A stretch of 64,000 nucleotides of DNA from Piromyces finnis finn (Eukaryota; Fungi; Neocallimastigomycota). Both the position numbers and the translations under genes were made by a program. The notes below the pieces were generated by a model. The model searched no databases. It saw only the letters and a program-made list of their open reading frames with translations, and was not told the DNA's origin. Location: contig MCFH01000026.1 of the NCBI GenBank assembly GCA_002104945.1, forward strand, positions 496,001 through 560,000, in the 5' to 3' direction. Of this stretch, positions 319 to 52,912 are shown piece after piece (the stretch's first letter is position 1; every line of letters begins with the position of its first letter).

Positions 319-533
319 TAGGAAGAGTTTAATACGCATTATTCAAATAGGTTAATTTAGTTTAGAAATTTCTTTCTTTTTTTTTTTTTTTTAAAAAAAT
401 GTAGGATCCCTTTCATTCTTTAATAAAGGTTAGATTACTATAAAATACATGTGATAAAATCACATTATATTCACATTATATGTCATCTTATTGGTGGAAA
501 TTTAATTATTTTATGGATTTGATCTTTTAATTG

Positions 534-1110: not shown

Positions 1111-1443
1111 TTTTAATTGAAAGTCACCAAATTTTTCGAAAAAAATTTTTTTTTTTTTTATTTTTTTGCTTTTTACTGTATACCACCACCTCTCAAAAAA
1201 CCTTTTTTTTTTAAACAATAAAAAAGTATATAAAGATCAACTTTTTTTTTCATATTTTATAATTTTGTCAAAGTAATTATACCGCCTTTTTTTTATTTCT
1301 TTTTTTTTTTTATAGTCAAATTTTCTTTTTTTTTTTTTTTATTTAAATATTAAAAAAATAAATTAATAAATTTTTTAAAATTTATTTTTTTTTAAATATA
1401 AAAATATAAAAAAAAAATTTTTTTTCTTTTTCTTTTTTATTAT

Positions 1444-3927: not shown

Positions 3928-3963
<36 letters not shown>

Positions 3964-4104
3964 TTCTCATTATAAAAGTAAAAAGTAGTAGTAGGTTAAA
4001 ATAATATCTTTAAATATATTATATAGAAATATATTAAAAAAAAAAAAAGTATAAAATAAAATGCTAGTATTATTAATTATTATTATTTTTCTTTTTTTTT
4101 AGAA

Positions 4105-20053: not shown

Positions 20054-20192
20054 GATTGTCCAACTTTTAGAGATATTAAACATTACAATTCCATAGTCCA
20101 GCTATTAAATTTTTTCAGTCAACGTAATTCCAACAATCCTATCAATAATAATGAAAATGTTAATATCAGTAGAGATAGCAATAATAATAATA
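20054..20192 (+). mobile_element. LINE family A internal fragment (post-zinc-knuckle region), plus strand
   Basis: Translates DCPTFRDIKHYNSIVQLLNFFSQRNSNNPINNNE, matching the ORF at 26640-26775. Confidence 0.9.
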
Positions 20193-20412
20193 GAGTTTTA
20201 TCTTTTAGTATTTTTATAAATAGAAAGAAACATAAATTTGTTCATTATATACCTTATATTAACATTTTTTTATATTAGAAATTTATCTTACCTAGTGAAA
20301 TGAATTATAATTATATCCTTGTTCCTCACACAAAACAAAAAAATTTTAATTTCCATCGAATGTCAAAAAGTCCAACAGTAATTACAATAAAATTTTCAAA
20401 AAATGAACCAAT

Positions 20413-20997
20413 TCTTACTTTCAATAGCCAGTAGAAGTCATAGGCAAACTCTGGGTACTCATAACATAATTTAATAAAACCTTTGGTTTCAATAAATTTA
20501 TTATCGTCATAGTATTTGGCTTTGATTGAATTTCCTTTGAAATCTTTCCAATAAAAATTTTTAACTGCTTTAACATCTCCATGCTTCTTTAATTTTTTTT
20601 ATTAAATGTCCTACTTGATTTGCACCATGTATATTTTCTAAATTTAGGAATGTAATCGATAAGGTGTGAGATGATACAATTTGAATTTTTCCATTTATTA
20701 AAACATCTAACCTGAGCTAATGCTTATTTCACTAACAATGAAGGAATATTCAAATCTTTTGAAATAGAGTATAGAAATATAAACGATACAACTTTATGAA
20801 CTCCGACAACCTATTGTATTCTTTTGTTAACAAGTTTCTGAGTAATCCTAGACCTAGCTTTGTTGGATCCAAGTAATGGTGCAAAGTATTGAAACTCTGC
20901 TGATCACTTGGGAGTTAAGTACTAGCTTTTTAAAAGAAATAGGAATATTAGGATTTCTTAGGAATTTAATGACTGAGAAAAGTCCTTTTAAAACCTT
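20413..20997 (-). mobile_element. LINE family A internal fragment (post-RT region), degenerate
   Basis: Aligns at nucleotide level to 26885-27468, with stops and indels. Confidence 0.9.
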
Positions 20998-21072: not shown

Positions 21073-21416
21073 TTTTTTTTTAACGTCATCAAATATTTTT
21101 AAACTTTATTAAAATTATAATACATGTTATAAAAAACAAAAATTAAAATTAAAAATAAAAAAATGGGTTTAAATAAATATAAATGAATAAAAATTGGGTA
21201 TGATGTATTCGAGCCATTTTAATTAAAGTAAGAAAGCCACTATGATACTAAAATACAATAATTATAGTTGACTTCCAATGAGAGACACCGAGCCAAAGAT
21301 TAAAATTTTATCATGGGACAAAATTATGATCTTCATTGGTTACGCTAGCCCTCCTGGCCTGTCTTTCTGTTTCTTCAGCATTGACGCTCTTGGATATTGC
21401 TTCAAACCTTTTGAAC
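21073..21416 (-). mobile_element. LINE family A 5'-truncated copy (ORF end, 3' UTR, A tail)
   Basis: A T run, then aacgtcatcaaatattt..., aligning to 25879-26222. Confidence 0.9.
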
Positions 21417-21654
21417 CTTGACCACAATCTATCCTACGCTACAACTTGAAACTTTATTTTCAAATTAGTAATTATGTCCATCTTTATCCTGCTTACAATT
21501 TTTTTTTTTTTTTTTTTTTTTAGACTAGGAAGAGAATACACATCTTTTATTTATTTATTTAATTTGTGATATTACATAATATTTGGTGATAATACATATT
21601 GATATAATAAATAATAAATAAAAATAATAAAATATATATAAAATTGGTCTCTAC

Positions 21655-24600
21655 CTAATAAATTAAATGAAATAAAAAAAAAAGAAGTAATATCAGGTAT
21701 GATAGTGTGGTGTCCACTAAACTCTCCCATAAGCTCATAATGTTTTCATTCGAATTTGAGGAAATACTAACATTGAACCCTGTGTACGGAACATTAGGAA
21801 TGTTCCTTTGCCATATCGGTAAGACATCGGCGCTCTTGATTACGTTAGGTGTCTTACTAAACCTCTCAAAAAGTAGCTTCATAGAGCTACTAATGATAGG
21901 GATTGTTTTAGTAAGAAAAGCCGCGAGACCCTCTACCTATGGAACATGAGACCCCGATGAACTGTAAAGCTGTTCATTCAAATGTCTTTGTTCCGCCTTA
22001 TCGATTTGTAGCTCATCGTAAGCTAAAGTTCTACCAAGAAGGAACGTAAAAATATAGTTATAAATTGTTTTTCTTACTTCAGGGAGTAAGTATGTGATGA
22101 ATTGATTCTTATATTTATTGTAAAAAAGGGTAAAAAGATCGTCAAGAAAGTTAAGTGAAGAAGCTCTGTATTCAGAGAATGCAGAACATTCTAATATTCA
22201 ATGGTAAAAAGATTGTTCGTCATATCCGCAACATGGACAGACACGAGGGCAGTCAGGAGTAACTCTATTACTGGTAATAGCAACTCGGGTAGTATTTTCA
22301 TAACCGCATCGAATATGAATAATCCAGGTAATTCCTAAATTTAAGTGAGGTTTGTTGAGACCGATATGCATTAGGCGATTTGAATTAAGGAATTTGTTGT
22401 TAGTATATCTGAGGGCTTTACTTCCATTATTTAGCCTAGTATTATTCCAATAATGTTCTCTATTATCTTTAGTACTTTTAATATTTATTTTCATAAGCTT
22501 CTTATGTAGTGAACAAGATTCTTTGGCCCATGAGTAATGAGACATGGGAGGAATAGATCGGACGAGATCTTTAATTATACAATTTGATTTTCTCCATTTA
22601 ACAAAGCATTTCACTTGTTGTGCAGCACAAATACCTGAAAGGGTAGGAATCTTCATATCTCTTGTAAGAGCATACAGACTAATAAATGAATTTCGTTCAA
22701 AAACAAAATCTTTGTTATTAAAACTTTTATTGTGAAAGCTATTGATACTCCATAAAACAGCAGAATTGATAAGAGATTGGACTCTTCTAGTTCTATTTTT
22801 GTTGGAACCAAGTAAAGAAGCATAATAAGAGACTTTGCTTAAAATATAAGAATGAATTACTATATTTTTTAAGCCAATAGGAACACAATTGTTGATGAGG
22901 AAGTTCTTCATTGACAGAACAACATTCCTAATTTCCTCAATAGCAATGGGACCATTTATATCCCATGCTATTTGATTGATATGATTGAATCGGAAGGCTC
23001 TTTCCCAGTAACCACGATTTAAGCTGTGATTTGAAACATTCAGATGCAAGATTTTCATAATGTTCAGCCCAACGTTTTAATTGTTCTTGAGAAGTAAATA
23101 AATCCTTGCCATTCTTGTCCTTAAGAGTTGAAACATGGGAGGACGAATAACTTGGTTTGGCAAGTTTTTTAAGGCCTTTCCAACCTTGTCTAAAGCTTTT
23201 ACCAATAAAAGGTTCACCGATAGAAACAATATTAGCTTTATAGAGATTGGATCTGAATTTACTCTTAACCTTTTTGATGGTATTACATAAATTTTGGTAT
23301 ATGGAGAACGGGTTAAGATAATTTTCCATGTCAGCGCGATCTGAAAAGGGCTTAATATTTTTGTAAGCCAGGTGTTTTCCATGTGATAAGTTTTTGATGT
23401 ATTGAGGGTAATGGAATGCTGGACCTTTTAAATCTGCAGGCACAATGGCTTTTATTTCTTTACCTATAGTTTTGGAGGTATCTAAAAATATTGAAACCAT
23501 ATCGTCAGCCGAAAGGCTATCGCAATTTGCTTCATGCTCAGAAGCTAGAATAGCAAAGCGATTACTAGTAAGAATGTCAGAACACTTTGTGTTACAGATA
23601 TGACTTGACCATTTAAAGGTCTTCTTAGGCTTTTTGAAACCATCAGAAGAGTCTTTTTTACAAGATACAAGGATCGGTTTGTGATCAGAAACATCGTGAA
23701 AAGCTCTTCACAAACTGAAGATTTGTTTATGTGTTCTGTCATAGCTTTGTTGCATATAATATGATTAATGCATGAAGATTTAGATCCTTTTTCCCAAGTG
23801 AAATTATTACCAGTTAATTCTGCCATAGTCCAATCCGGGAAGTGTTGTGATATATAAGATTTGATTTTAATAGCTGACATATTAAAGTCTCCTACAAGGA
23901 TAGCTGGGTGGTTGAACTTGTTAACCACTTATCAAGTTCATCAAAGGCAATTAATCTAGCATCCGGCCATCTAGTTTGCGGGAAATAAATATTACCGATG
24001 GTACATCTCTGGTTCCAAAATGACAGTATTGTAACTGAAATGATGTACTTATATAGAAGAGGTTCAGGAGTAAAGAAACAAGAGTTATGAACACCAATGT
24101 AAAGTCCTCTCATACCTGGAACTTTAGGATTAGCACGTCTGTGTACTGGTTTATGGTTCAGTAGGCATGGGGAGGAAATTGCATTACCACAGAGGAATTG
24201 GCTGTTACCTACTTCTTGAAGGCAGACATATACAGGTTTGAAAACAGAGATGAAGTATAAAACACCGTCCTTTTTCTCAGGGTTCCAACCATTGATGTTC
24301 CAACAAGTACATAAGTTGAAAAAGGAAGCATTAGAACTTAAGTGACTAAAATAGAAATTGTCAGAGAGTGAACCAGTAGTGGATTTGATAGATCGTTTGT
24401 TTTTGTATGATCTATTGTTTTTGAGCTTATCAATGAATTTCCAAGATATTTTACTAGAGATTGGGAGTTTTTTAGAAAGTAAGTGTATAAGTAACATGGC
24501 TTTAAGCGGGCATTTTCCATTGACTTTTAAAATGAAATAGGTATCGAGTGATTGTGAATATTTTTTGGTGAGGGATTGAAGAATATCATTGAAAGGTTGA

Positions 24601-24748
24601 ATATCCTTTAAAAGAAATTCCATTAGTCGTTGTTTTAACCATGAACTAAGATCATGGATAAAAATTAGATATGATTTATTGGAGTTAGATCCGAAGAAAC
24701 GCGAAGGCCACGTCGTAAGGTAGGTACAGTACAATTGGTATTGTTCAT
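21655..24748 (-). pseudogene. Family B polyprotein remnant: N-terminal domain, APE endonuclease, no RT, zinc knuckle, C-terminal domain
   Basis: APE motifs CWNINGW, CLQEVG, ILVGDFN and SSCINHI; zinc knuckle CPCCG..EQSFYH*ILEC. It has frameshifts and stops, and SMKNF joins directly to LINNCVP, skipping the RT. Confidence 0.85.
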
Positions 24749-25422
24749 TTTGAAAAAACTTATTATGACAATAGATATTAATGAATTGAAGTATTGATAT
24801 ATTGATATAAATAAGATAATGAAATAAAATATATAGTAAAATATAAATAATAATAGTAAAGACGGATATATTATATAGCTAGTGGATTATTTGTCAAACA
24901 ATATTTTAAATTTTATGGCTGGAAAAGTAGCTAAGTTGTTGACAAACTTAGTTCTAACTCTACTGAAGACTTTAAACGGAAAATAAATTTTGAATATCTA
25001 TCACTTTGGATTTCTGTATTATAACTGTATTTTGAAGGCACTTTATATTTATAAGATTTGTATTATTTATTGGATGATTTTTGTATTGTGTTGATTCTGA
25101 TTGTTGAATTTGAACATTCATTAAGGTTATTTATGTTGTAAGGTAGAGAGATAATAAGAGTGAAAAGTTGTTATATCAAAAATAATGGAAAAAAGTTGAA
25201 AAATTTTGGGTAAACATAATAAATTTTTTTTTTAAAAGATAAAATTGAAACAAGAGTAGTATTTATAATATAAAAATAGAATCCCCGATTTTCCAGGATT
25301 GAAGCTTTGATAATAAAAAATGTTAAAAAAAAAAAAAGGAAGTTAATATTTACCATAAGAGTCCATAATAAACCTAATAAAGTTATACAAATATATAAAA
25401 ATACATATAATATAAAGTATAT

Positions 25423-25466
<44 letters not shown>

Positions 25467-25727
25467 AAAGAGATAGAAAGAGTATACAAAAGAATGTTGG
25501 TAGGAAAGAGATTCCTTGGAAAATCTAGAGTTTCAAAAAATAAAAAATAAAAAAGATATGACTAGAATCATATTAAATCATAAAAAAAAAAAAAAAAAAA
25601 AGCCGCGCCCCTCGAAAAAATAAAAAATAGAAATAGAAAAAATAAAAAGATTAAATATGATTATGGTAATGAAAGCCGCACCCCACAACGAAACTCAAGA
25701 ATAAATGAAAGGAATAACAAACTAACT

Positions 25728-25772
25728 TTTTTTTTTTTTTTTTTAACGGCATCAAATATTTTAAACTTTATT
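25728..25772 (-). mobile_element. 45-nt extremely 5'-truncated family A insertion
   Basis: A T run plus aacggcatcaaatattttaaactttat (the family A 3' terminus), flanked by the 13-bp TSD taacaaactaact at 25715-25727 and 25773-25785. Confidence 0.85.
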
Positions 25773-25853
25773 TAACAAACTAACTGAAAAAACAAAACTA
25801 TCTGACTAATCAACATATAAAGAGTAGAAAGGAATAAAAGAACAAAGAGAATA

Positions 25854-28800
25854 TTTTTTTTTTTTTTTTTTTTTTTTTAACGGCATCAAATATTTTAAAC
25901 TTTATTATTAATTTAATTAAAATTATAATACATGTAATATAAAAATTAAAATAAAATAAAAATAAAAAAAATATGTTTAAATAAACACAAATGAATAAAA
26001 ATTGGGTATAATGTATTCTAGTAATTTTAATTAAAGTAAGAAAGCCACTATCATACTAAAGTATAATAATTGTATTTGACTTCCAATGGGACACCGAGCC
26101 AAAGATCAAAATTTTGTCATGGAACAAAATTATGATCTCCATTGGTTGCGCTGGCCCTCCTGGCCTGTCTTACTGTTTCTTCAGCATTGACGCTCTTGGA
26201 TGTTGCTTCAAACCTTTTGAACATTGTCCATTGCTGGCCAATAGCAAAAGGCATGATTTTGGTTAGAAGTTCCGCGGTTACCGTCAAGAATGGTGTTCCT
26301 TCGTTAGTATCAGATTGAATCTGACGCTTACAAAGTTCTTTCCATTCCCTTGAATTGTAATTAATATTGTTAAAACTTCTTCCCCCAAGAAGGAATTTAA
26401 ATATTTCACTGCACACACTAGAATAATCATACACATTAATATTCACCGGATTATTAGAACTATTACTATCATTAACTAAATTACTATCTAAATTAGAATT
26501 ATTATCTTCACTATTGCTATCATTACTAATATTATTATTTCTATTACTACTATTGTTATTATTACTATTTCTATTACTACTATTGTTATTATTACTATTT
26601 CTATTACTACTATTGTTACTATTACTATTAATGTTATTACTATCTCTACTGATATTATCAATTTCATTATTATTGATAGGACTATTGGAATTACGTTGAC
26701 TGAAAAAATTTAATAGCTGGACTATAGAATCATAATGTTTAATACGGATATCTCTAAATGTTGGACAATCTAATAACCAATGTTTAATACTTTGATCTCC
26801 ACACTTGCAACATGGACAGTAGTTAGGACAAACTGGATCAACAAATTTGGCAGCTTTGGCAACTCTAGCATCCAACTTGTATCCGCTTCTTGCTTTCAAT
26901 AGCCAGTAGAAGCCATAGGCAAACTCTGGGTACTCATAACATAATTTAATAAAATCTTTAGTTTCAATAAATTTATTATCATCATAATATTGCGCTTTGA
27001 TTGAATTCCCTTTGAGATCTTTCCAATAAAAGTTTTTAACTGCTTTAACATCTCCATGCTTCTTTAGTTTTTTTTCAAGTGTCCTACTTGATTTGCACCA
27101 CGTGTATTTTCTAAATTTAGGAATGTAATTGACAAGGTGTGAGATAATACAATTTGAGTTTTTCCATTTGTTAAAACATCTAACCTGAGCTAACGCACAT
27201 TTGGCTGACAATGGAGGAATATTCAAATCTTTTGAAATAGAATATAAAGATATAAACGATACAGCTTTATGAACTCCGGCAACCCATCGTATTCCTTTGT
27301 TAACATGCTTCTGAGCAATCCTAGACCTAGCTTTGTTGGATCCAAGTAATGGTGCAAAGTATGAAACTCTGCTAATCACTTGTGAGTTAAGTACTAGTTT
27401 TTTGAAAGGAATAGGAATATTAGGATTTCTTAAGAATTTACTGACTGAGAAAAGTCCTTTCAAAACCTTGTTATTAAGAGCTTTAATTACTGATTTAAGG
27501 GACAGATTCTTATCAAATGGAACACCAAGATAAGTATAACAATCAGTAGTTGGAATGGGTTGTCCTGCTAAGTAAAATGTTGGATCTCTCTTGTTCTGAT
27601 TTTCTATTGATTCAGGACGAATCACCATCGTTGAACATTTCTGGATACCAAATTCCATTTCATTATACAATGCCCATTCATTAACTCTTCTAAGCATCTT
27701 TTTTAAGCATCCTCTTGTTGGAGCACAAATAACTATATCATCTGCAAAAAGTCCACCACAGCATCGAGTGTCACCTAAACTGACTCCTAGATCTTCGCAC
27801 TCTTTAAATATATCATTAATAAAGAGATTAAAGAGAATAGGAGAAAGAGGGCATCCTTGACGGACTCCTTTCTTCACATCAAAAGATTTCGAGAATTGTC
27901 CATCTAATTTGACATTAGCCTTAGATGTTAAATATAAATTTTTGATGAATTGTAAACTCTTACCTCGGATTCCTAAACAATCTAATTTATGGAGAATATT
28001 ACCGATTGGGACTGAATCGTATGCTTTCTTGAGATCTAAAAAGGCCAAATATGTCTCTTTATTATCTAATTGACGTCTACGGCATATTTCTTGGATTGAA
28101 ATGAAAAGACTGATACTTTCTTCCTTTTTTCGAAAACCAAATTGTTCAGGTCTAATGAAATTATCCTTTAGACCATATTCTGAGATTCTAGTGGTGACAA
28201 TTTTGGAAATCAACTTAATACCATTATTGATAAGTGATATACCTCGATAGTTATCACAATCTGTCAAATCACCCTTCTTAGGAATAGAAACAATACTGGA
28301 TTCATTCCATGAGTTGGGGAAGTCTCCATCCCAAATACGGTTGAATAATTTAAGAATAAAATTTAACCCATGAGCATCATTATCTGAAGTAGTATTACCA
28401 GAAGAATTATTACCTGTAGCATTATTAGAATCATTACTTGATGGAATTAATGCTTTGTAAAATTCAATTGGAATACCATCCGGACCTGATGCTTTATAAT
28501 TTGGAGTAGAGAGGATAGCTGACTTGACTTCATCAATACTAATATCTTGGTTGATATCCCATTCATCAAGCATAGGAAGTGAAAAACGTTTATTCGTTGG
28601 TTCTTCATACCAATGCTCTAGATCAAGACTTACACCACTTGGATCTGATGCAAGGTTTTCGAAATGATCATGCCACACATCTAGTTGTTCTTCCGTAGCA
28701 ACAACTAATTCTCCATTTTTATTTTTAATTGGTTGAGCAATAAAGAAAGAATCTTTTCCAATTTTTGCAGTTTTCTTGATCCATTTCCAGGCCTTCTTAG

Positions 28801-31544
28801 GATTATGACTCTTCATATACTCACATCCTGTTTTAATCCAATGAAGATATTCTTGCTTCCTAAATTCATTACATCTTTTGTGGATGTAATCAATGAGCTT
28901 ACGGTAGATTTTAATTCTTTTAATAAATTCATCTATATCATAAATTCTTTCTTTTTTAAATCTCTTATACAACTTCATTTTGATTTTTTGAAGATTAAAA
29001 ATTTGTTGTGAAATATGAAATGAAGACTTTATAACATTATTTGCTGAGGTAATACTGAGCTCGTCTGCAATTGAAAAAGCAGTTGAAGTAAACTCTTTGG
29101 AAAGTTCATCTGTAGAAACATTAGGATCGTTGAATTTTGCTGAAAGTATTTGGAATTTATTATGACTGAGAATAGATTCCTTTTCCTCAGTACATTTTAA
29201 TCTATTCCATTTCAGAATTTTCTTAGGAACATTAAAGTCATTAGAAAAATCTTCCATAGGAATAATTTTACCATTAATAAGAAGTGGCTTATGGTCTGAT
29301 ACAGGATAAAAATTATTTATAAATGATCCTGAGTGAATAAGATCTTTCATCTTCGAATTGATAAGAGCATGGTCAATGTCGGAAGATTGATCACCTCGAG
29401 TCCAAGAGATAGTCGACCCTCTAAGCGGAAGAATTTCCCAATCTCCTAATCCATTAGTTGATAACCAGTTGGATAATTTTACTTTAGACATATTAAAATC
29501 ACCAACAAGAATCGATGGATGGGATGAATGAGTTTGTAACCACAAGCGAACTTCTAACTTTGCATGATCAACATAGATGTTGCGATGACTATGAGGCATA
29601 TAAACATTTCCAATCGAGCATTTGAATCTGTTCCAGAGACTAAAAGTATAAATAGAAATAATATACTTTCCAGAGAAGTTTTCAAGTGAGGCTTGACACG
29701 AATTGTGAAAACCTAAATATAAACCTCTCATTCCCGGAACTGATTCATCAGCTTTCTTGAAAAAGTGTCTATAGTTTCGCAAAGTAACACGACAAGGATA
29801 ATCTGTATTCGATCCAGAACCATTACCAGTTTCTTGGAAACATAAAAATAATGGTTTGAAAATAGCTGTGAAATAGCTAATACTATCTCTCTTTTCGTGA
29901 TTCCACCCATTGGTGTTCCAACTAAAACAAAAAGAAAAGTTATCAGGCTTGTTGGATGAGGAAGAATCGTTGCTATTATTATTATTATTAAAGTCATCGT
30001 TATTAATGGATGATGCATCAGAGGAATAAGTAGAACTATTACTAGATGGCTGTGAAACTGAAGAACTATCAACTATTGAACTTTTATCAGAGTTGATAGA
30101 ACTATTAGAATTAATTGTTGAATGTTGAGATTGAAATTGTGTTTGCTGTAGATCTGGAATATTTTCATGATGGGAAACTTGTTGAAGATCTTGTTGTTGA
30201 AGATCGGATTGTTGATGAGATTATTGAACTGATTGTTGAAATGATTGTTGAATAGAATGTTGATGTTTATTAGAAACTAAAATTTTACGTTTGAGAGTGG
30301 AAAAAGTATATTTGTGATTCCTTCTACTACGAGCTGAAAAGGAAATTGAGGTAACTGAAAGTTTCTTCTTTAACATGTGTAAGATTTTAATACAATCTTT
30401 TGATGAACCATGAACCTTGACTAAGAAAAAGTGATCATTGAAAGTCTGAAAATATTTAACACTAATAACTGAATTAAATTTATCTTCTAGAATAACCTCG
30501 AGTTTTTCCCATAGCATATTTACTGACCATGATCGAATACCACGGATAAAGAAGGAGCGAATATCATCTAAGGGGATACCATAAGACCGGGTACCACGTC
30601 TGATATAATTCTTATCTTTAATATAAAGGACTGACATGATAATAAATTCTAATTAAAAAATATTGAATATAAAATAAATACTAATAAAAATTACAAATAT
30701 AACGTATATGGAAAAAAATCTGTCTCTCTCTCTCTTCTTAAAAGTGCTGGATAGTACAAAAATTGTTACGATGCTTTGTTTAAAGTTTCTTTTTTTTTTT
30801 TTTTTTTTTTTTGAATTCTAGTTGTAAATTTTCTTTAAAAATTCTAGTTTTGGTTTGTTGTTAGTAAATTCAATTCGCTTTTTGACACTAAAATTGTTTG
30901 ACTTTACTTTTCATTAAATATTTAAATTGGTAAAAAATTTGAATCAAGAATGTCGACACCAGAAAGCTTGTGAATAGTATTTTTACATGATGTAGAGTGA
31001 ATCAGTCTCTTACAAGAAACAATTCAACAATAGCTACATGAATATAAAAATACAATGCAAATGCTAAAGTTGACTACATTGGATTCTTACAAGAGAAGAG
31101 TAGTACTACATGAATACATGAATAAAAGAAAAAAATACAGCAACAAAATGTATTACTCTTCTAATTAAATACTATACAAACTTACCTGAGTATCAAACAT
31201 TCACTTATTCATCAAATACTTAAATTCGATGAATAAAATGTTTTTTAATCGCTCAGTACCATGAGCTTAGTCCTAATAATTTTCCCTTAAAGACTAACCA
31301 AGCATCCATTGCGCAATACTTGGATTTAATTCTTTCTACTCTCTCAGTACCATGAGCATGAGTAGACTCCCTTGATAAACTACGTTTATTAAATAAATGA
31401 AGGCACGTTTCCAAGAGGGCACCAAGCATCCATTGCGCAATACTTGGATTTAATTCTTTCTACTCTCTCAGTACCATGAGCATGAGTAGACCCCCTTGAG
31501 AAACTACATTTATTAAATAAATGAAGGCACGTTTCCAAGAGGGC
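25854..31544 (-). mobile_element. Full-length LINE family A (APE-RT non-LTR retrotransposon, ~5.7 kb)
   Basis: Poly(A) at 25854-25878. 37-bp TSD ataaagagtagaaaggaataaaagaacaaagagaata at 25817-25853 and 31545-31581. Tandem 5' monomers. Confidence 0.95.
26117..30637 (-). CDS. Single-frame LINE polyprotein (~1506 codons: RRM-like N-terminus, Q/S/N linker, APE, RT, CCHC-type knuckle) with one in-frame TAA at 30221-30223
   Basis: ORFs 30221-30637 and 26117-29782 are in the same frame, and the gap reads open (SWNTNGW, CFQETG). RT motifs: KASGPDG, YRGISL, QFGFR, DLKKAYD, GVRQGCPLSP, LFADD. Knuckle: CPCC..SIKHWLLDC. Confidence 0.9.
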
Positions 31545-31545
31545 A
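31249..31545 (-). repeat. Family A 5' monomer array: two 124-bp units plus a variant partial unit, rich in hairpins
   Basis: Units start at 31298 and 31422. Each contains the palindrome attgcgcaat and stems such as tctactc/gagtaga and ccaag/cttgg. Confidence 0.9.
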
Positions 31546-31780
31546 TAAAGAGTAGAAAGGAATAAAAGAACAAAGAGAATAAGTAATAAACTGGGATAAC
31601 AAAATGTCTATGAAAGCTAAAAATTAAAGAGAAATCAAAAATATTCAAAATCAGTATTTAATACTACCAAATCAAACAATATTAAGTTAAATGTTATAAA
31701 GGTTGTAAAACACAACTACTATCTAATAAGTTGAAGGTGTAAGAGAAATATAAAATAACAACTAACACTCAGATTATCAA

Positions 31781-31931
31781 CTCTACTCGCTCAGTACCAT
31801 GAGCTTAGTCCTTATAATTTTCCTTTAAAGACTAACCAAGCATCCATTGCGCAATACTTGGATTTTTTCTACTCTCTCCGCCGTACCATGAGCATGAGTA
31901 GAGCCCCTTGAGAAACTTCATTTATTAAATA
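31781..31931 (-). repeat. Same 5' monomer module at the 5' end of family B
   Basis: Near-identical to 31249-31395 (gctcagtaccatgagcttagtc...ccaagcatccattgcgcaatacttgg...gtaccatgagcatgagtaga). Confidence 0.9.
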
Positions 31932-32301
31932 TATCCTGCTTACAAACATTATATCCTTTCCATTTTAAACCAATATATTCCATTTAAACACACCTATAAA
32001 AAGCATTCATAAAAAAAAATTTTTTTTTTAAATTATATCTTTATTACTATTTTAAAAAAATATATATTACAAAAGTTGATTTATTACTAGAATGGTAAAA
32101 GTTAAACTATAAAACAATTATATAATAAAAAGAAATGGGTATGATTATATATTAGATAATTTAACGAAAATTAATAAATTTCTTACGTTGTAAAAATAAA
32201 ATATACTAATTTTAATAATGATAATTTTTTTTAAATACTTGTATGATAGTCGTTTAAATGATAAAAGTGTTTATAAAAACGATAAAAAAATAGGTTTATA
32301 A

Positions 32302-34461
32302 TTAAAGGAAACGACGACGCATGAATTCTTCACGTCTTCCTGGACTCCAAGCACTTACAGAGGTAAAGTAACCAACAATACGAGTGATATGATCAATTAT
32401 TGGTTCTGAACATATTGGACAAGTAGTAGCATTACCACTTATAGTAATATGTTTTTGAGTACAAGAATTGTAAGAATAATTAATAGCAAAATGTTCACAA
32501 TGATTTTTTATAGCGTATTTAACAACAGCTTGCATTTGTGATGCAGATTGCATACGATCAGCTAAATTGATATGAGTAATACAACCACCACTCATATATT
32601 TAGCCAAGTCACCATCAATCTTTATTCTTTCTTCTAAAGAAATATCAGTCCAAAGTGGAACAAATTGGTTAGCATAAATTTCATATTGCATATCATTAAC
32701 TAACATATCCTTCTTAGCATGTTTAATGGCCAAGGATTCACCTGGAACTTGTTCAACATTGAATAAAATCTTGTTTTTAATATCACACTTATCGTTAGCA
32801 TAATCAGTAATGTGCTTTAAGATACGACGAGAGAGTTCAATACCATCTTCCTTTAACATATCATAACCCATTTCATTTAAACCTTCGTAGAGACCGTTAA
32901 TACCAAAGGTTAAGAAGAATCTTTCCAAGAACATGTAACCTAATTCGTCCTTAAAGAATGGACAAGCACCTCTTTCCATTTGTTTAACAATGAAAGCACG
33001 GTGAGCTAATAACATATAGTAAGCCTTTTCAAGTTGAGCATCTAAATGTTCAAAGAAAACATCAATAGCTTTTTCCTTATCTTGTTCCTTAGAAGCGTAG
33101 TAACCCATTCTAGCTAAATTAAGAGTAACGATTCTTAAACTACCAATGTTAACACCACCTTCACCAAAGACACTCATGTGAACATTTAAGTTGTTGATAA
33201 CACGGCAGCAGGAAGCAAGTTTGTTAGAGTCACTAACAAAGAAGTTGAAAAGACCATTCATATTAATTTCACAAAAGTATTCAAAGGTTTCTTGATCCAT
33301 AACTTCCTTATCATCGTTAACCTTTAAGTTTAAGGTGACAACTGGGAATGGATATGGAAGGAAAGATTCAGTAGATTGACCACGAGCAAACCAATTACAG
33401 AAAATCTTTTGTAATTCCATAACTAAATCGAGATTTGGTTGAGAACCATCTGGATAATAAACAGTTCCAAACAAGTGTTCAAGACTTGGTTTATCAAAAA
33501 TGGAAATGTTAGTGAAAGCACTTTGACAAGAGAAACGATGAGCACAATTTAAAATGTGAACAAGACTTTGATAATCGTTTTCGATTTCTTCAACCTTTTC
33601 TTTATTGTTAACAACAGTTTCAATACCTTCTAATTGAAGGTAGTAAGCGTAGTAAACAAAAAGATCAGCAACAGCAATAGCACCAGCTAATTCTTGAGAC
33701 ATACTAGTAACAGTTTCAGCAACTTGACCAATGAAACTTCTAGTGTGTTTTGGAGGAAGAGAACGAAGTTGACGGTTAAAAGTGATACCTTGAGTTACAA
33801 CAGGTTCAACAGACATAGCATAACAGTATGGAACAAAAAGGTAGCAAGAATCATGTAAATAAATATCACCGTTAATCCAAGCACGGAACATATCAACAGT
33901 CTTTTCACCACCATAAATACTTTTAACATGACTAAAGAATTGGGAAACATTAGCCAACTTTTGATATGGAGCAACAATTTCACGAATTTCCTTTGAATGG
34001 AATTTGTAAGTACCGATAGCGCCGTTAGCATTAGCATCGATACTGTGATCAGAACCATAATTCATTACATCAGTAAAGTTTGTGTTGATATCTAAAATTT
34101 CTAAACCTAAACCTTCCAATTTAAGTAATTTTCTCCAAATTTCATCTGGAGTTTTACCAGTTGGATCATGTTGTAAGAGTTCGTAGAAATCAGCATCAAT
34201 AGAAAGAGAAACACTAGTAGTAGTATAATCTGGGTTAATTATATCTGGAACTTCAGTAGCATCAGAAAGGTTAGTGTGGTCAGAACCAATAGTTCCTTGA
34301 GAAACTTCAGTATTTTCAGAAACTTCAGTGTTTTCGGATTCTGAAAAGGCGTCTTCATTTAAAGTACATTTTTTATCTAATTGTTCTTCAATTTCTCTTA
34401 TTTTCTTATCTTGAACAAACTTGTTAATTGGATCATTAATAATATCGTATTGAGTAGTCAT
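32302..34461 (-). CDS. nrdD: Class III (anaerobic, glycyl-radical) ribonucleoside-triphosphate reductase
   Basis: 719 aa, intronless. Motifs: YLHDS..VPYC, AGAIAVAD, PFPVVTLN, ASCCR, NIGSLRIVTLNLAR, LTFGINGLYE, NVEQVPGES, GGCITHIN and C-terminal C..KH..CPIC..ITRIVGYF (glycyl-radical loop). Confidence 0.95.
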   Translation of the reverse strand: MTTQYDIINDPINKFVQDKKIREIEEQLDKKCTLNEDAFSESENTEVSENTEVSQGTIGSDHTNLSDATEVPDIINPDYTTTSVSLSIDADFYELLQHDPTGKTPDEIWRKLLKLEGLGLEILDINTNFTDVMNYGSDHSIDANANGAIGTYKFHSKEIREIVAPYQKLANVSQFFSHVKSIYGGEKTVDMFRAWINGDIYLHDSCYLFVPYCYAMSVEPVVTQGITFNRQLRSLPPKHTRSFIGQVAETVTSMSQELAGAIAVADLFVYYAYYLQLEGIETVVNNKEKVEEIENDYQSLVHILNCAHRFSCQSAFTNISIFDKPSLEHLFGTVYYPDGSQPNLDLVMELQKIFCNWFARGQSTESFLPYPFPVVTLNLKVNDDKEVMDQETFEYFCEINMNGLFNFFVSDSNKLASCCRVINNLNVHMSVFGEGGVNIGSLRIVTLNLARMGYYASKEQDKEKAIDVFFEHLDAQLEKAYYMLLAHRAFIVKQMERGACPFFKDELGYMFLERFFLTFGINGLYEGLNEMGYDMLKEDGIELSRRILKHITDYANDKCDIKNKILFNVEQVPGESLAIKHAKKDMLVNDMQYEIYANQFVPLWTDISLEERIKIDGDLAKYMSGGCITHINLADRMQSASQMQAVVKYAIKNHCEHFAINYSYNSCTQKHITISGNATTCPICSEPIIDHITRIVGYFTSVSAWSPGRREEFMRRRFL

Positions 34462-35392: not shown

Positions 35393-35922
35393 TTCCGAGT
35401 GCATTTCTCCCATCGATCAGAGTTAGCTCCAATGGTGGTTCTTAGAGAAACGTTGGCTCATTCCTATTGCTAGGTGGTTGTGACCTCCTGGTCTGTCATA
35501 CTGTTTCTTCAGCTTCGACGCTCACTTAATCCATGTACATTAGATGCATGTCGTTGTACGATATTTCACAACTACAATGCTAAGCCTCTTATAGTCAATT
35601 TGATCACGTGTCAACCGCCCCTAATGTTTACACTTAAATTGATTAAGGAATATTATGTGTTTTTGGCATAGCCTAAGTCACCACTTATTAAGTTCTAATT
35701 TGGAATGTACCATGTACACTAGACCCTCTCAGGCCGGCTAGACGAGTGTTATTATCATAGTAGTAAATTAGAAAGTTCATTTATACTTACCTGAATATCA
35801 TAACCCAACCATGGCAAACCCAGTGGGAAAATCCACAGGCACTGACATCTGCGGGGTCGAACCAGAAGCCTTATGTATGCTAAGGAAACGCCTTAACAAC
35901 CAGGATAAAAACTGGAACGACC
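35363..35922 (-). mobile_element. tRNA-derived SINE, full-length copy 2
   Basis: Identical to 574-1110 apart from three 1-nt indels in C runs. T run 35363-35389. 13-bp TSD cttttaaaataaa at 35350-35362 and 35922-35934. Confidence 0.9.
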
Positions 35923-43655: not shown

Positions 43656-46600
43656 ATACTATAACTAGATATTGTTATTATTAAAAATATATATATATAA
43701 AAATATAAAAATATTTCTAATTGTTTATTATTTATTTCATAAATTTTGTAAAAGTATTTAAATAAAATAAAAAATAAAAACTATTATATATAAATTATTT
43801 AAAAATAAAAATTTAATAAAATTTTTTGATATTTAGTAAATAATTAAGGGTTAGAGTAAAATGATTTTGAGGGTTAGAATTATAGTATAATAATCTAAAT
43901 TTTAACTTGTCAATAAATCTTGTTTTCTTTTAATAAATGTATTATTTATATTATGTAATCATAACATTATTACATATAAAATAAATGGATACAGAAGAGT
44001 TAACAACGCAAGAATTTATAATGAATTGAGTATAGAAATTGAAATATAAAAAGTAGCGTATTTTTATTTTATTATGCAATAATAAATAGTTTTTTTTTTT
44101 TCGAAAATTAACTTGTTTATAATTTTCATTTATTATAACAATATACTTTCATTATAATAATTTAAATATATTTAAATAATACATCCATTTTATTTATATT
44201 AGAAAAATCTTATTTACTGATTATTATAATACACATAAATAATAATAATAAATAAGCATAGATTTTTATTAATTTACTCAGGTATTCATTATATTGAAAT
44301 AAATATTTTAAAACTCAAATTGTTTGGTAAAAATACAAGTTTGAATGTATATTAATACATTTATTTTATTTTATTTTTTTTGTTTTATTAGGTTCTTACA
44401 AATGAAAAAAAAATTATATATAAAACAAATTTAAATATAATCAATATGCATTATATAGATTTTTATAATTGTATTAATAATTTATGTTATTTTTTTTAAA
44501 AAAATAATTACAAATAGTGATGCACAATGAATAAAAAATGAAATAACTTTATCCCCCATGATATTTATAAAAAATTAGGTGTATTAAAGATAATTTAATA
44601 TGTACTATTTAAAAATAAGATAGATCTTGGAAAAGATATTAATTTATTAAAAGGTTAGAATAAAAATATTATTTTTATTATTATTATTTTTTTTACTTTT
44701 TATATATTATATTATTATTTTGTATTTAACAATTAATACTTACACATATATATATATATATAAATAAAAATTATATATATATACATATAAAGAAACAAAT
44801 AGCAATAATTAATATACCTTTTATTTATTATAATTTATCTTTATGTATAATTAATTTAGTAGTTTCATTATTAAACATGTAAAACATTTTTTTTCTAGTT
44901 ATAACAGAACAAATCTTATAGATAATTAATATTTAAAAAAAAAAGAAAAAAAAGAAAAAAAAAAAACATTCTTATTAAATAATAATAAAAATATAAATAA
45001 CTATGGGTGTTATAAAAACAAAAATATTTATATTACTTTCATTTTTTTTAAAATTTTATATAAATAAAACTTTTAACTATTTATTTCGTGGTTTTTGAGT
45101 GCATTTATATAATTAGAAATCAAATATATATTATTATTAAATTATTTTTTTTTTGTATTATAAAAAGTAATAACCAATCTACTCTTAAATGCATTTATAT
45201 TTTTGAATATTGACCTTTATTTAAGTAATGAATAGTGAAAAATCAAAATATATTGAAAAAGTTAGATTGAATATAGATATATAGCTTATTGCATTGTTTA
45301 TTGACACATTGTTCAATAACCTAATATGAAAATGAAATATGTATTATGAATTATTATAGAAAGTTGACTTTGACCTTTTTATCTACTCTTAATTGAATGA
45401 TGCAAAAGTGAAAAAGAGAAAAGAAAAAAGAGAGAGAAAAAACTAAGTAGAAATAAAAAAAATACATAAAAATATAATAAAAGCATAAATCTATATTATT
45501 ATTTATATAAAGGGGTAAATTATATTTTTTTTTGAAATTATTGCAAATTATTTTTTATTTTATTTTTAATTTTTTTTTCAATTCAATTTTTAATACATTA
45601 TTAATATTTATTTATGTATCATGATTATTACATTGTCCATGTCACATGTTACATTATTTTTTTATGTTTTTCATTATCCTGAATTAAATGTATTGTCCAT
45701 AAAATCTTGGATAAAGTATTTTCTTTTATTCTTCCTTTATTCTGTAATTAAAGGGTAAGTAATTATTAAAGTTATATTAGCATTTACATATATTTTAATA
45801 TTTTAAAATCTTTTATCTGTAATATTTAAGAATATAAAGAACATAGTAATAGTATAATGTATAAAGTATAATATTTATTTTTTTTTTTTTTTTATTATTT
45901 AATATATAATAAATTTCTAAAAAGTTAAATATTTAATATTTATATTGTTATTATATTATCTATATAAAATTTTATAATTAAATATATATAATAAATATAA
46001 AAGAACCTTTATCCTTTTATAGAATTTTATTATGTAAATTATATATAAATATAAATATAAATATAAATATATTTGTTTAAAGACATTTGTAATGTAGTCT
46101 TTTTAAAGTCATTGAACTCTTAAGCTTAAGTATTAGAAATATGTAATTTGTAATATTTTATTTAAAAAGAGGTATTTTTCATAATATATAATTAATAAGT
46201 GTTAGATAATATCAAAATATTAAATAATATTAAATAGTATTATATATAAAAATAATATATAATATTATAAAGTTAATAAAGTACCATTTAATTAAATTAA
46301 AAAATGATTATTATTTTAGTGATTTAAATATAATTAATTATTATATTACATCACTATATTATACTATATTATACTATATTGGTTAAAGCATTATTATACA
46401 ATAATATTGTGTTTCTCTAAAAACAAACCTAATTTTCTTATTTTTTGTTTTTATTATATATTAACAAAAAATTTATTGGATAATAAATAGTGAATAAATA
46501 ATTATATATAATTATCTTTACATATATTTTAAATAAAAGAATATATATATAAATGTACATATTCCTATCTTTTTATTTTCGTTATTTAGCAATATATATA

Positions 46601-46760
46601 TTTTTGTTATTTACAATATTTATTTACTTATTTTTTTTGCATAGAATAAACAAACAAATAAACATACAATATAAATAAAAAGAATAATATTTGTAATACT
46701 AAATATAAATACTTTTATAATACAAATATTAGTAATATTTTTAAAAATAAAACAATTTTA

Positions 46761-48629
46761 ATGTCCACTACTTTATATTTTATTTTATTTTTTATTTTAT
46801 TCATTACTTTTTGTTTTAGTAGTAGCACTATGATTTATAAAACTTTTTTTAAAAATTTAAAGAGAAATCAATTTGAATATTTAAACTTTAATGGTTTAAA
46901 ATATTCAGAAATTAAATATATTATTAAAGTTACCTACTTGTTTTATAAAATGAAAGAGATGAAAAGAAATGACATTAAAAATAAATTCTTTTTATCTTTT
47001 CAAAACAAATTTAAGATAAGTATGAAAAAGCAAATTAATAATATATATTTAATTAAAAAATTTCAAAATTTAGAGGATTCTTATTCCTTAAAACATATGA
47101 AATTAAGGAAAGGAATTCAAAGAATAAAAAATAAAGAAAATAATTCTTTAAATAATAAAGAATATTTTCATTTAATTAAAAAAACTAAAGATAAGCATTT
47201 AATTCGAAAATCGTCGAAAAAATGCTTATTTAATATTAAAGATTTTATTACAAAAAAGGATATTAAAAACAATCAGAAAATATTCCTTGAATTTTGTAAT
47301 AATAAATATAGTTATATTAATTATAACTTTTTGAATAATAATGATCCAATTGTTGATTCCTTGGATCAAATTAAAGAAGAAAAAGAAGAAATAAGTTATG
47401 AAGAAAATGGTAATTATACCATTTTTAATATTCCTAATAATGAAAAAGTCGAAAAAGAAGAAGATATAAAAGAAGATATGAATGAAGAAAAGGTCGATAA
47501 AAAAGAATATGATAATGATGAAGAAATTGAAGAAATAAATGAAGAAATTGAAGAAATAAATGAAGAAATTGGAGATGATGGTACCATTATTTATGTTCCG
47601 GATGAAGAAGTTGATAAAGATAATGAAAGAGATGTCATACAAATTATTTTATCTCTTTTCAAAGATCGAATCAATGAAAAAGAAGAAGATGATGATAATG
47701 GAAAAGAAGAAGAAGAAGAAAAAGAAGAAAAAGAAGAAAAAGAGTATGATGGTGATGAAGAACAATCTAATGAAAATAATTATCTTGGAATTATTTCACA
47801 TGAATCAAAATCAAATGATCAAAGTATGGAAGAAGAAAGTAATAAATCATTAATTTTATTTTCAGAAGAAGAAGAAGAAGAAGAAGAAGAAAGAAAAGAA
47901 AAAGAAAGAAATGATGTAATGGAAGAAAGTGTTAATAATATTATTCCATTTTCTTTAAGTGATCAAATCGTTAAAGATGATGATAGAATTACAGCATTAT
48001 TTCAGTCACATCAAAACAACAATAACAACTACATTAATGAAGATGACAATAGTACAATTATTTTGAGTTCTGGAGAAGAAGAAGAAGAAGAAGAAGAAGA
48101 AAAAGAAGAAGATGAAAATGAAAAAGAAACATTTGAAAAAGAAGAAACAGAAGAAGAAGATTTTGAAGAAAAAATGAAAAGGAATACTTTTAATGAATTG
48201 GAATATTATTATACGAGTCCAATTGATTATACACCTTCCATTGAAAATATCGAAAACTTGCAAGAAAGAGTTAATCTATTAAATTGTAAACTAAAATTAT
48301 CCCAATATATATTACCGAATCTTGACAAGAAAAAGTATTTTATGAGGTTGACAGAAATTCAAGAAGCTATTATTTATATCAGATCAATTTACAGAAGGAA
48401 GAATAAGAAGATCCAAAAGTTAAAGAAAGAGACTGAAACAAATGCATTAGCAAGAAAGAGCACCAGAACTATAGGAAGAAAAGCCAAGAAAGTAGAAGTT
48501 CAAAGTTTAATTAATATAAATAAAATTAAAGCAAAGGAAGAAAAAAAATCTACCATAGATTTAATAATTAATAATATGAAAAGTTTAAAATTAAACAAGC
48601 AACGAAACATATTAAAAAATGAAATATAA
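46761..48629 (+). CDS. Orphan protein, basic-acidic-basic, copy 1
   Basis: 622-aa stop-free frame in very AT-rich DNA, preserved in all three units. No family recognised. Confidence 0.6.
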   Translation: MSTTLYFILFFILFITFCFSSSTMIYKTFFKNLKRNQFEYLNFNGLKYSEIKYIIKVTYLFYKMKEMKRNDIKNKFFLSFQNKFKISMKKQINNIYLIKKFQNLEDSYSLKHMKLRKGIQRIKNKENNSLNNKEYFHLIKKTKDKHLIRKSSKKCLFNIKDFITKKDIKNNQKIFLEFCNNKYSYINYNFLNNNDPIVDSLDQIKEEKEEISYEENGNYTIFNIPNNEKVEKEEDIKEDMNEEKVDKKEYDNDEEIEEINEEIEEINEEIGDDGTIIYVPDEEVDKDNERDVIQIILSLFKDRINEKEEDDDNGKEEEEEKEEKEEKEYDGDEEQSNENNYLGIISHESKSNDQSMEEESNKSLILFSEEEEEEEEERKEKERNDVMEESVNNIIPFSLSDQIVKDDDRITALFQSHQNNNNNYINEDDNSTIILSSGEEEEEEEEEKEEDENEKETFEKEETEEEDFEEKMKRNTFNELEYYYTSPIDYTPSIENIENLQERVNLLNCKLKLSQYILPNLDKKKYFMRLTEIQEAIIYIRSIYRRKNKKIQKLKKETETNALARKSTRTIGRKAKKVEVQSLININKIKAKEEKKSTIDLIINNMKSLKLNKQRNILKNEI

Positions 48630-51600: not shown

Positions 51601-52912
51601 ATAAATCTATATTATTGTTTATATAAAGGGGTAAATTATATTTTTTTTTGAAATTATTGCAAATTATTTTTTATTTTATTTTTAATTTTTTTTTCAATTC
51701 AATTTTTAATACATTATTAATATTTATTTATGTATCATGATTATTACATTGTCCATGTCACATGTTACATTGTTTTTTTATGTTTTTCATTATCCTGAAT
51801 TAAATGTATTGTCCATAAAATCTTGGATAAAGTATTTTCTTTTATTCTTCCTTTATTCTGTAATTAAAGGGTAAGTAATTATTAAAATTTTATTAGCATT
51901 TACATATATTTTAATATTTTAAACTCTTTTATCTGTAATATTTGAGCATATAAAGAACATAGTAATAGTATAATGTATAAAGTATAATATTAATTTTTTT
52001 TTTTTATTTTTTATTATTTAATATATAATAAATTTCTAAAAAGTTAAATATTTAATAAGATTTATATTGTTATTATATTACCTATATAAAATTATTAATT
52101 AAATATATATAGTAAATATAAAAGAACCTTTATCCTTTTATAGAATTTTATTATGTAAATTATATATATAAATATAAATATAAATATAAATATATTTGTT
52201 TAAAGACGTTTGTATTGTTGTATTTTTAAAGTTTTTTATTTATCATTGAACTCTTAAGCTTGAGTATTAGAAATATGTAATTTGTAATATTTTATTTATA
52301 AAGAGGTATTTTTCATAATATATAATTAATAAGTGTTAGATAATATCAAAACATTAAATAATATTAAATAGTATTATATATAAAAATAATATATAATAAT
52401 ACTATATAATACTATAATATTATAAAGTTAATAAAGTACCATATAATTAAATTAAAAAATGATTATTTTAGTGATTTAAATATAATTAATTATTATATTA
52501 CATCACTATATTATACTATATTGGTTAAAGCATTATTATACAATAATATTGTGTTTCTCTAAAAACAAACCTATTTTTTTTTTTTTTTTTCGTTTTTATT
52601 ATATATTAGAAATTTATTGGATAATGAATAGTGAATAGATAATTATATATATAATTATATAATTATCTTTTACATATATTTTAAATAAAAAAATATATAT
52701 ATGAATGTACATATTCCTATCTTTTTATTTTCGTTATTTAGCAATATATATATTTTTGTTATTTATAATATTTATTTACTTATTTTTTTTGCATAGAATA
52801 AACAAACAAATAAACATACAATATAAATAAAAAGAATAATATTTGTAATACTAAATATAAATATTTTTATAATACAAATATTAATAATATTTTTAAAAAT
52901 AAAACAATTTTA

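Follow-up and report, generated by a model that had tools for sequence, protein, structure and literature searches.

How do two LINE families with deeply diverged proteins come to begin with the same short module, and what might that module do? The question is raised by a window of 64,000 nucleotides (the whole stretch of DNA analysed here) from the anaerobic gut fungus Piromyces finnis, contig MCFH01000026.1, in which positions 31249-31931 comprise the 5′ ends of two nested LINEs, both on the (-) strand.

Two nested LINEs and their common 5′ module

Element A (25854-31544) is inserted within the 5′ UTR of element B (21499-31931), and the target-site duplications of the two copies enclose the module (Table 1). 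The elements are thus not side by side: A, with its 37-bp duplication, lies inside B, which has its own 14-bp duplication. Nor is 31249-31297 a partial copy of the monomer; this segment is a separate linker of 49 nt that forms a UGGUAC hairpin of its own. TRF reported the 124-bp unit in 2.0 copies at 31297-31545 with 97% matches. The 26-nt core CCAAGCATCCATTGCGCAATACTTGG has three exact matches in the window (31298, 31422 and 31836) against 0 expected, and the palindrome ATTGCGCAAT, noted beforehand, is indeed found at 31308, 31432 and 31846. The two families had also been said to share a near-identical module, which is true genome-wide, where their monomers are 96-100% alike, but not in the window, where the B monomer is 88% identical to that of A and truncated at about nt 24.

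A reverse transcriptase (RT) domain was detected in both elements (RVT_1, E 1e-35), the best PDB relatives being human L1 ORF2p (E 5e-33). B contains an apurinic-endonuclease-like domain upstream of the RT (Exo_endo_phos, E 3.5e-11) to which A aligns with 44% identity, and the SDHKP and GDFN motifs are invariant in 17 relatives. The elements have the poly(A) tails, target-site duplications and 5′ truncation (in the B copy of the window and in copies elsewhere) of APE-type, L1-like non-LTR retrotransposons. Intact copies of A and B have one APE+RT ORF each (~1520 aa in A), the two ORFs sharing 44% amino acid identity over 1115 aa, while the N-terminal regions of the family proteins are poorly conserved (27-32% identity). 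The B ORF of the window has frameshifts and its RT core is deleted (B-main nt 3256-4273). As predicted, the coding regions and the remainder of the 5′ UTRs are dissimilar, with no nucleotide match between A and B outside the module other than a 101-nt stretch of 70% in the RT region. A literature search on non-LTR elements of Neocallimastigomycota found nothing relevant.

Table 1. Features of the nested elements A and B, in positions of the window
Feature	Positions	Strand	Remarks
A outer (terminal) 124-bp monomer	31422-31544	-	First bases of the copy G+CCCTC
Helices in the A outer monomer	P1 31532-31543 with 31491-31502; P2 31459-31490; P3 31422-31447		
A inner 124-bp monomer	31298-31421	-	97.6% identity to the outer monomer
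A 49-nt linker	31249-31297	-	Decayed monomer-like unit; own stem and CUCA-UGGUAC-UGAG hairpin
A family-specific 5′ UTR	30638-31248	-	Without alignable similarity to the B UTR
A coding region, APE+RT	26117-30637	-	Three frames in this copy (broken)
A 3′ UTR and poly(A) tail	25854-26116	-	Tail at 25854-25878
A target-site duplication, 37 bp, left copy	25817-25853		
A target-site duplication, 37 bp, right copy	31545-31581		Inside the B 5′ UTR
B single monomer	31836-31931	-	5′-truncated at about monomer nt 24; P3 core intact
B linker	31787-31835	-	96% identity to the A linker in this copy
B family-specific 5′ UTR, first part	31546-31785	-	Interrupted by A
Remainder of B	21499-25727	-	5′ UTR second part, ORF, 3′ UTR, poly(A)
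B target-site duplication, 14 bp	21485-21498		TATCCTGCTTACAA; second copy at 31932-31945

Copies across the P. finnis genome

We identified 615 monomer cores genome-wide, compared with 0 in the control, together with 399 A-UTR and 58 B-UTR candidates. In both families the retrotransposed unit begins exactly with the module, present as one to three tandem monomers of 124 bp followed by a decayed copy, the 49-nt linker, which in A is ~92% identical to that of family B. Dimers predominate in A, and one or two monomers are found in B copies. The start base CCCTCTTGGG was shared by 37 of the ~50 copies sampled from both families, with six others beginning one base later, and all of these copies adjoin unrelated flanks. 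An untemplated 5′ G, which is a cap footprint in some L1 insertions, was absent in ~45 full-length copies.

A and B differ by 0.3% across the outer monomer, 4.6% across the inner one and 7.1% across the linker; past the linker the UTRs are unalignable. Where extra monomers are present, the junction with the canonical first base is imprecise, falling after monomer nt 70, 91, 121, 122 or 124+7, and looks like a template-switch junction. A module divergence of 0.3-4.6%, despite ORFs of 44% amino acid identity, bears out the earlier idea of a swappable cassette exchanged between families, for which recombination or template switching is the best reading. The original prediction had named B copies lacking the module as an outcome that would speak against it; all of the 28 B-type 5′ UTRs with linker, sampled without regard to monomers, have at least one.

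Fold and diverged versions of the module

The stems listed in the original prediction are those of the MFE fold of the sense (-) strand (-42.2 kcal/mol, z -5.4), compared with -32.1 kcal/mol and z -3.7 for the antisense strand. Across versions the sense-strand z ranges from -4.3 to -5.4, the antisense fold being always weaker in intact versions. The fold comprises three domains: P1 encloses an inner hairpin, P2 is in two parts and closes with GGUAC, and P3 closes with GCGCAAUG. The 5′ end of the module coincides with the foot of helix P1. P2 and P3 are broken in none of 83 monomers, and within the genome a U.G pair of P3 has changed to C-G in A inner monomers and to U-A in B monomers. Changes in inner monomers concentrate in domain 1, which holds 11 of the 16 variable sites of the inner unit of dimers and has a ΔG of -18.9 to -7.4 in inner units, against -20.2 kcal/mol. 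A master pair table had P1 broken in 37/37 inner monomers; refolding shows that the commonest change, G10 to A, shifts the register only (-18.9 versus -20.2 kcal/mol).

In metagenome contigs, A-like, B-like and C-like relatives begin with diverged versions of the module, which have the same three-domain fold and many compensatory pair changes. The match at the 5′ end of L091 has an E of 1e-13 and those of L084, L078 and L095 are marginal (E 4e-4 to 6e-3), as is that of L075 (E 7.5e-3), which lies at the position predicted from UTR homology and has a z of -5.2. A second case of sharing is provided by the A-like L078, B-like L084 and C-like L095, which have nothing but the module in common, in a version (module-2) of 84-94% identity. 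Judged from these sequences, the module is probably shared across families in at least two organisms, the second represented by metagenome contigs. No module was detectable in several relatives for which over 1 kb of upstream sequence is available (L080/L102, L104, L106, L090 and L087), and the CCCTC-containing repeats of 52-109 bp in the L106 5′ UTR have no detectable relation to it. A loose gapped pattern, CCCTC..TGGTAC..GCGCAATG, gave at least 120 and 67 matches in genome and viral contigs, all of them chance hits within DNA of prokaryotes or viruses; nhmmer confirmed none. The palindrome, a putative C/EBP-type bZIP site, is perfect in P. finnis and L091, has a changed half-site in module-2 (TATGCGCAATGA) and is absent in L075; the conserved part of this region is GCGCAAUG, as the P3 loop.

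A plain MAFFT alignment of the diverged versions was discarded, as it misplaced the helices and RNAalifold consequently saw only 1 compensatory pair; a model-guided alignment and independent MFE folds were used in its place. In the former, which is model-fitted with one antisense row among its sequences and on which both of the following counts rest, 89.6% of cells are paired, compared with 70.0±2.1 in shuffles and 40-48% in slid controls, and both sides change in 24 of 41 pairs, compared with 14.9±2.2 and 3-9. The independent MFE folds gave the same helices, with double compensatory changes relative to P. finnis numbering 7 in L091 and ~18 in module-2. Unpaired motifs are kept: CGU follows P1, GUAC lies in the loop of P2 and GCGCAAUG in that of P3, although the last differs in the L075 version. 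Covariation, proposed at the outset as a check, was thus found, with all three helices kept through compensatory changes in the diverged metagenome versions. The accompanying suggestion of a new structured RNA is consistent with the lack of a matching Rfam family, and we regard the module as a candidate new cis-acting RNA family, supported by covariation.

Possible roles of the module

We propose, with a probability of roughly 0.55, that the 124-bp unit is a conserved structured 5′-terminal cis-module of a single-ORF APE+RT LINE clade of anaerobic gut fungi, acting as promoter and folded leader and swapped between families. As DNA it would be an internal (downstream) RNA polymerase II promoter with the start site fixed at its own first base, a step that we infer by analogy with other LINEs. 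As RNA the three hairpins may form a leader for some post-transcription step such as protein binding, stability or 5′-end integrity. The module would spread between co-expressed families, and monomers would be added at the 5′ tip, when reverse transcriptase leaves the 5′ end of one LINE RNA and continues on the homologous module of a second; under this proposal such template switching is why the terminal monomer differs so little between families. The palindromic loops may just as well be bound by dimeric DNA-binding proteins, and the homogeneity of the module could stem from DNA-level gene conversion.

Mouse L1Md elements (A, Tf and Gf monomers plus tether) display variable monomer number, upstream extension of the array and promoter-body mismatch by recombination (PMC6454616, PMC9022269). 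The P. finnis module likewise consists of tandem 5′ monomers, variable in number, before a non-monomeric tether (the 49-nt linker). It differs in its unit length (124 bp versus ~200 bp), in having usually one or two units, one exact start base and a three-hairpin fold with covariation, and in being shared between families of 44% protein identity, whereas sharing in mouse is between L1 sub-lineages. The mouse monomers are compared here as promoters, a role that is putative for those of P. finnis, and we know of no sequence relation between the two. In the trypanosomatid L1Tc/ingi clade Pr77/L1TcRz is a 5′ signature common to several retroposon families, serving both as an internal promoter with a downstream core element and as a structured RNA (PMC3383444, PMC4748587, PMC8190864, PMC4035085). 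The likeness, which is one of kind and not of sequence homology, is that the same short 5′-terminal signature occurs on several families of one genome (A and B), as module-2 is common to the A-like, B-like and C-like contigs. Pr77 however has an HDV-like ribozyme fold and is found in kinetoplastids, while the fungal module has three consecutive hairpins, a first base C and tandem monomers.

Mosaics of mouse L1 were reportedly described by Saxton and Martin in 1998. In such mosaics and in RT template-switch chimeras LINE lineages trade their 5′ parts (PMC6454616), as is seen for the fungal 5′ parts, whose junctions of added monomers resemble template jumps; the fungal exchange differs in being limited to a 120-300-nt terminal module and in crossing deep family boundaries, in at least two organisms. 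With the HDV-like ribozymes of R2, RTE and related LINEs the module has in common a structured RNA at the exact LINE 5′ end, which could define that end. No nested double pseudoknot of the HDV-like fold was found, and Rfam gave no match at E≤10 for the window region or at E≤1 for four diverged versions; the same searches yielded no covariance-model match to hammerhead, twister, hatchet, pistol, hairpin or VS. Threading onto an HDV-like topology failed: a partner for P2 is missing, position +1 is a C and P1 is long.

A 5′ end that is nucleotide-exact at the base of a conserved helix would also suit an RNA-processing module, either a new self-cleaving RNA or a host-nuclease substrate, that cuts the LINE RNA from read-through transcripts; since the cut would fall exactly at the P1 foot, a promoter of its own would be unnecessary. 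Such release is performed by 5′ HDV-like ribozymes in R2, RTE and L1Tc (PMC3185411, PMC4035085). The absence of an extra G of cap type fits this explanation, as do the strong conservation of structure with CGU, GUAC and GCGCAAUG kept unpaired and the concentration of inner-unit substitutions in domain 1 of dimers with P2 and P3 intact, which would be expected if an inner unit, when active, severed the outer one. We nevertheless consider it unlikely, as no Rfam ribozyme model matched in a 1.4-kb search even at E 10, the first base is C and not the G of an HDV-like P1, P1 is 10-12 bp long and threading of a conserved nested double pseudoknot failed. Moreover the middle unit is intact in trimers, and for some inner units the loss in domain 1 amounts to only ~1.3 kcal/mol, certain terminal B units being weaker than these. 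Rather more doubtful is a 5′-end-defining RNA of a new class, a self-cleaving ribozyme or dedicated processing signal with a compact tertiary fold in which CGU[G/A][C/U] after P1 would pair with the P2-loop GUAC, freeing the LINE RNA from read-through transcripts at the P1 foot; through its two self-complementary loops it would also join LINE RNAs in pairs, accounting for rampant module exchange between families.

Loops that are invariant while stems covary, both kept loops having palindromic cores, could instead mark a protein-binding, packaging or dimerisation signal in which the loops bind the element's own or a host protein, or the GUAC and GCGC cores pair two RNAs, the 5′ position being secondary. 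The R2 protein binds structured 5′ RNA, and RNA dimerisation would favour template switching, frequent signs of which are seen at the module. We hold this to be quite improbable: the identity of the module despite N-termini of 27-32% identity argues against family-specific protein recognition, and the P3 loop differs in the L075 version. The terminal monomer is only 0-0.5% divergent across subfamilies and families, compared with 2-5% for the inner monomer and UTR, and varies between organisms as a host RNA would, which could reflect repeated capture of a cellular non-coding RNA retro-copied through RT jumping at the end of cDNA synthesis (compare U6-L1 chimeras). Such an origin is highly improbable, however, with family-specific substitutions inherited by single-monomer B copies, a dimer junction (TG) that is identical everywhere and therefore inherited rather than recreated, 615 monomers roughly explained by A and B 5′ ends, and no match to any known RNA family. 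A nested in B only 240 bp from the B monomer might also suggest a local accident, conversion or rearrangement between neighbouring copies that would be uninformative on the families; this has a negligible chance of being correct and is refuted by the module-bearing copies elsewhere: on other contigs A and B copies carry the module by the dozen, and the B monomer of the window is the most dissimilar of all (88%).

Should the module act as we propose, it would be a compact (~120 nt) portable element that fixes precisely where an RNA begins in anaerobic gut fungi, which are of biotechnological interest and have few genetic parts. With a 5′ module evolving in concert between LINE families of deep divergence, in at least two organisms, one can test how LINEs gain, retain and exchange promoters or 5′ ends, and whether template switching at the RNA level is responsible.

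Two LINE families and their common 5′ module

The subject of the finding is two LINE 5′ ends on the minus strand of the window (G+C ~20%), one nested in the other. They belong to families A and B, whose intact copies encode one long ORF (1524 aa in A, locus L070; 1470 aa in B, locus L067) with endonuclease and RT domains, and for both of which the best relatives of solved structure are L1 ORF2p. The two ORFs share 44% identity across 1115 residues, less in the N-terminal 250 residues. In line with the original prediction, A and B gave no nucleotide alignment outside the module except within the RT region, where one stretch aligned at 70%, and the monomer is repeated in the window, its 26-nt core occurring three times with none expected. 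The B copy of the window has lost its RT core and starts with one monomer, truncated at ~nt 24.

Searches of the 56.46-Mb assembly (232 contigs) returned 376 candidates for the monomer pair, 58 for the B UTR and 399 for the A UTR, and the core pattern (≤3 mismatches) was found 615 times against 0 for its reversed control. Among 60 fetched loci, the linker and 1-3 monomers (96-100% identical to those of the window) stood ahead of all A-type UTRs and of 28 B-type ones, with A mostly carrying dimers and B one or two units. B copies without the module, named beforehand as the refuting case, were thus not found. The wording "near-identical" was too strong for the pair in the window, where the B monomer is 88% identical to that of A, and too weak for the families genome-wide.

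Features of the LINE elements in the window and module matches in metagenome contigs
Feature	Position	Strand	Details
Element A	25854-31544	-	poly(A) tail and target-site duplication
Element A poly(A) tail	25854-25878	-	
Element A target-site duplication	25817-25853 = 31545-31581		37 bp
Element A outer monomer	31544-31422	-	124-bp unit
Element A inner monomer	31421-31298	-	124 bp
Element A linker	31297-31249	-	49 nt
Element A family-specific UTR			611 nt, downstream of linker
Element A coding region			contains RVT_1; broken in window copy
Element B	21499-31931	-	5′ UTR interrupted by A
Element B target-site duplication	21485-21498 = 31932-31945		14 bp
L091, C-like	49-165		R1, 55.5 bits, E 1e-13
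L084, B-like	153-243		R1, E 4e-4
L078, A-like	360-450		R1, E 6e-3
L095, C-like	171-261		R1, E 6e-3
L075, A-like	1126-1288		second model R2, E 7.5e-3

The LINE region of the window is a nest of LINE insertions. A 5′-truncated A-type 3′ end of ~40 nt (25729-25770), carrying a poly(A) tail together with an 11-bp duplication (AACAAACTAAC), sits in the UTR of B near the full A insertion, the duplication of the latter being unusually long (37 bp, against 14 bp in B and 11 bp in the short fragment). More A-type fragments (86-91% identity, one inverted) lie at 20054-20193, 20412-20997, 21073-21424 and 63383-64000, and short matches to the A 3′ UTR (nt 5351-5403) at 660-709 and 35484-35523, adjoining long T runs, are compatible with a SINE having a LINE-type 3′ end. 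A ~6.1-kb tandem unit occupies 45000-62700 in 3-4 copies of 97-100% identity. An intact 719-aa ORF with an NRDD domain (anaerobic class III ribonucleotide reductase, E 7e-85) at 32302-34461 on the minus strand ends 370 bp upstream of the 5′ end of B, on the same strand, so that read-through into the LINEs is possible. A reductase of this class is in keeping with P. finnis being an anaerobic gut fungus.

Exact 5′ ends and a gradient of divergence

The same first base (CCCTCTTGGG) was found in 37 of ~50 copies examined, from both families, and six began one base later. Flanking DNA was unrelated at all these shared start points, and none of the start-sharing copies carried an extra 5′ G. Where extra upstream monomers are present (L009, L012, L027, L006, L011, L053) the junction to the canonical first base is imprecise, partial upstream units ending after monomer nt 70, 91, 121, 122 or 124+7; such junctions look as if RT, having reached the 5′ end of its RNA, had jumped to another LINE RNA (template switching).

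Divergence of 5′ units within and between families A and B
Unit	Within A	Within B	A vs B
Terminal monomer	0.5%	0%	0.3%
Inner monomer	3.3%	2.5%	4.6%
Linker	0.8%	1.3%	7.1%
UTR	2.1%	1.3%	unalignable

In the fetched arrays the outermost monomer hardly varies between subfamilies or between the two families, the middle unit of trimers also has this invariant sequence, and the inner monomer is more variable than the UTR. As judged from these sequences, the outermost unit is either conserved or homogenised between families. Monomers are also inherited, since B-specific substitutions are common to the inner and the single monomers of B, and the module is old in B, as the older B copies (L034, L035, L036, L037 and that of the window) carry correspondingly diverged monomers. 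The linker with ~37 nt of A UTR (e.g. L023:1750-1834) matches R1, the covariance model of the P. finnis monomer, as a decayed monomer would (18-20 bits, E 0.002-0.005), and the linker (31249-31297) retains the CUCA-UGGUAC-UGAG hairpin; linker and start of the A UTR are therefore probably a fossil third unit.

Module versions in relatives and their fold

A profile of 17 relatives led to 80 metagenome contigs, whose LINEs group by ORF identity as A-like (55-65% to A), B-like (58-74% to B) and C-like (~47% to B, 44% to A). R1 matched the 5′ ends of four contigs (L091, L084, L078 and L095). The L075 match lies at the place predicted by UTR homology and folds at -55.9 kcal/mol (z -5.2). The covariance-model search detected no module in several relatives having long upstream sequence. 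One C-like contig (L106:487-788) carries a different 5′ UTR array, of 52-109-bp tandem repeats rich in CCCTCAAGTGGTAAAGGG, with no detectable relation to the module. L078, L084 and L095 have only the ~100-nt module in common (module-2, 84-94% identity) and differ in flanks, UTRs and ORFs.

Minimum-free-energy folding of the sense strand (-42.2 kcal/mol, z -5.4) gives the stems originally listed. Folding of the antisense strand is weaker (-32.1 kcal/mol, z -3.7), and the sense strand is the more stable in every version. Folded separately, all versions give the same three domains: P1, which opens the module with CCCUC or CCCCU and encloses a hairpin in P. finnis, L091 and L075, not in module-2; a two-part P2 with GUAC in its apical loop; and P3, with the loop GCGCAAUG in three of four lineages. 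An unpaired CGU directly follows the P1 5′ strand in all four lineages (P. finnis, L091:49-165, L084:153-243, L075:1126-1288), and with the next bases is able to form 3-4 bp with the kept GUAC. Rfam returned no match for any version.

Covariation, the lack of which was also named beforehand as a refuting case, was observed, with seven pairs altered on both sides and pairing retained in L091 versus P. finnis, and ~18 in module-2 versus P. finnis. In the model-guided alignment of versions (A9), which is model-fitted with one antisense row and so leans towards structure, 89.6% of cells are in standard pairs (shuffles 70.0±2.1%, slid controls 40-48%) and 24 of 41 pairs show both-side changes (shuffles 14.9±2.2, slid controls 3-9). 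Within the genome a P3 U.G pair has become C-G in A inner monomers and U-A in B monomers, and none of 83 monomers has a substitution breaking P2 or P3.

Possible roles and exchange of the module

We take the structure and evolution of the module as established and propose how it most likely acts. As DNA it would be an internal promoter that sets its own first base as the start, and as RNA a folded leader, and it would pass between families by template switching or by recombination at homologous monomers. The chief alternative is that the module serves in RNA processing or cleaves itself. This would suit the exact position of the 5′ end at the base of P1, the absence of a cap-type G, the kept unpaired motifs and the way in which domain 1 has decayed in inner monomers, but the module is without any ribozyme signature and several inner-monomer changes are mild in effect. 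The two palindromic loops, whose kept cores GUAC and GCGC are self-complementary, may also be binding or dimerisation sites, and the kept CGU[G/A][C/U] after P1 could possibly pair with the GUAC loop.

By sequence comparison, a second source (L078, L084 and L095) repeats the P. finnis pattern of one module version per community of families, with versions differing between sources. Vertical descent since the family split cannot give this pattern, so that the module must have been exchanged or homogenised within genomes. New here are a module common to two deep families, in P. finnis and again in a second source, and with it the divergence gradient, the junction evidence and the covariation across lineages.
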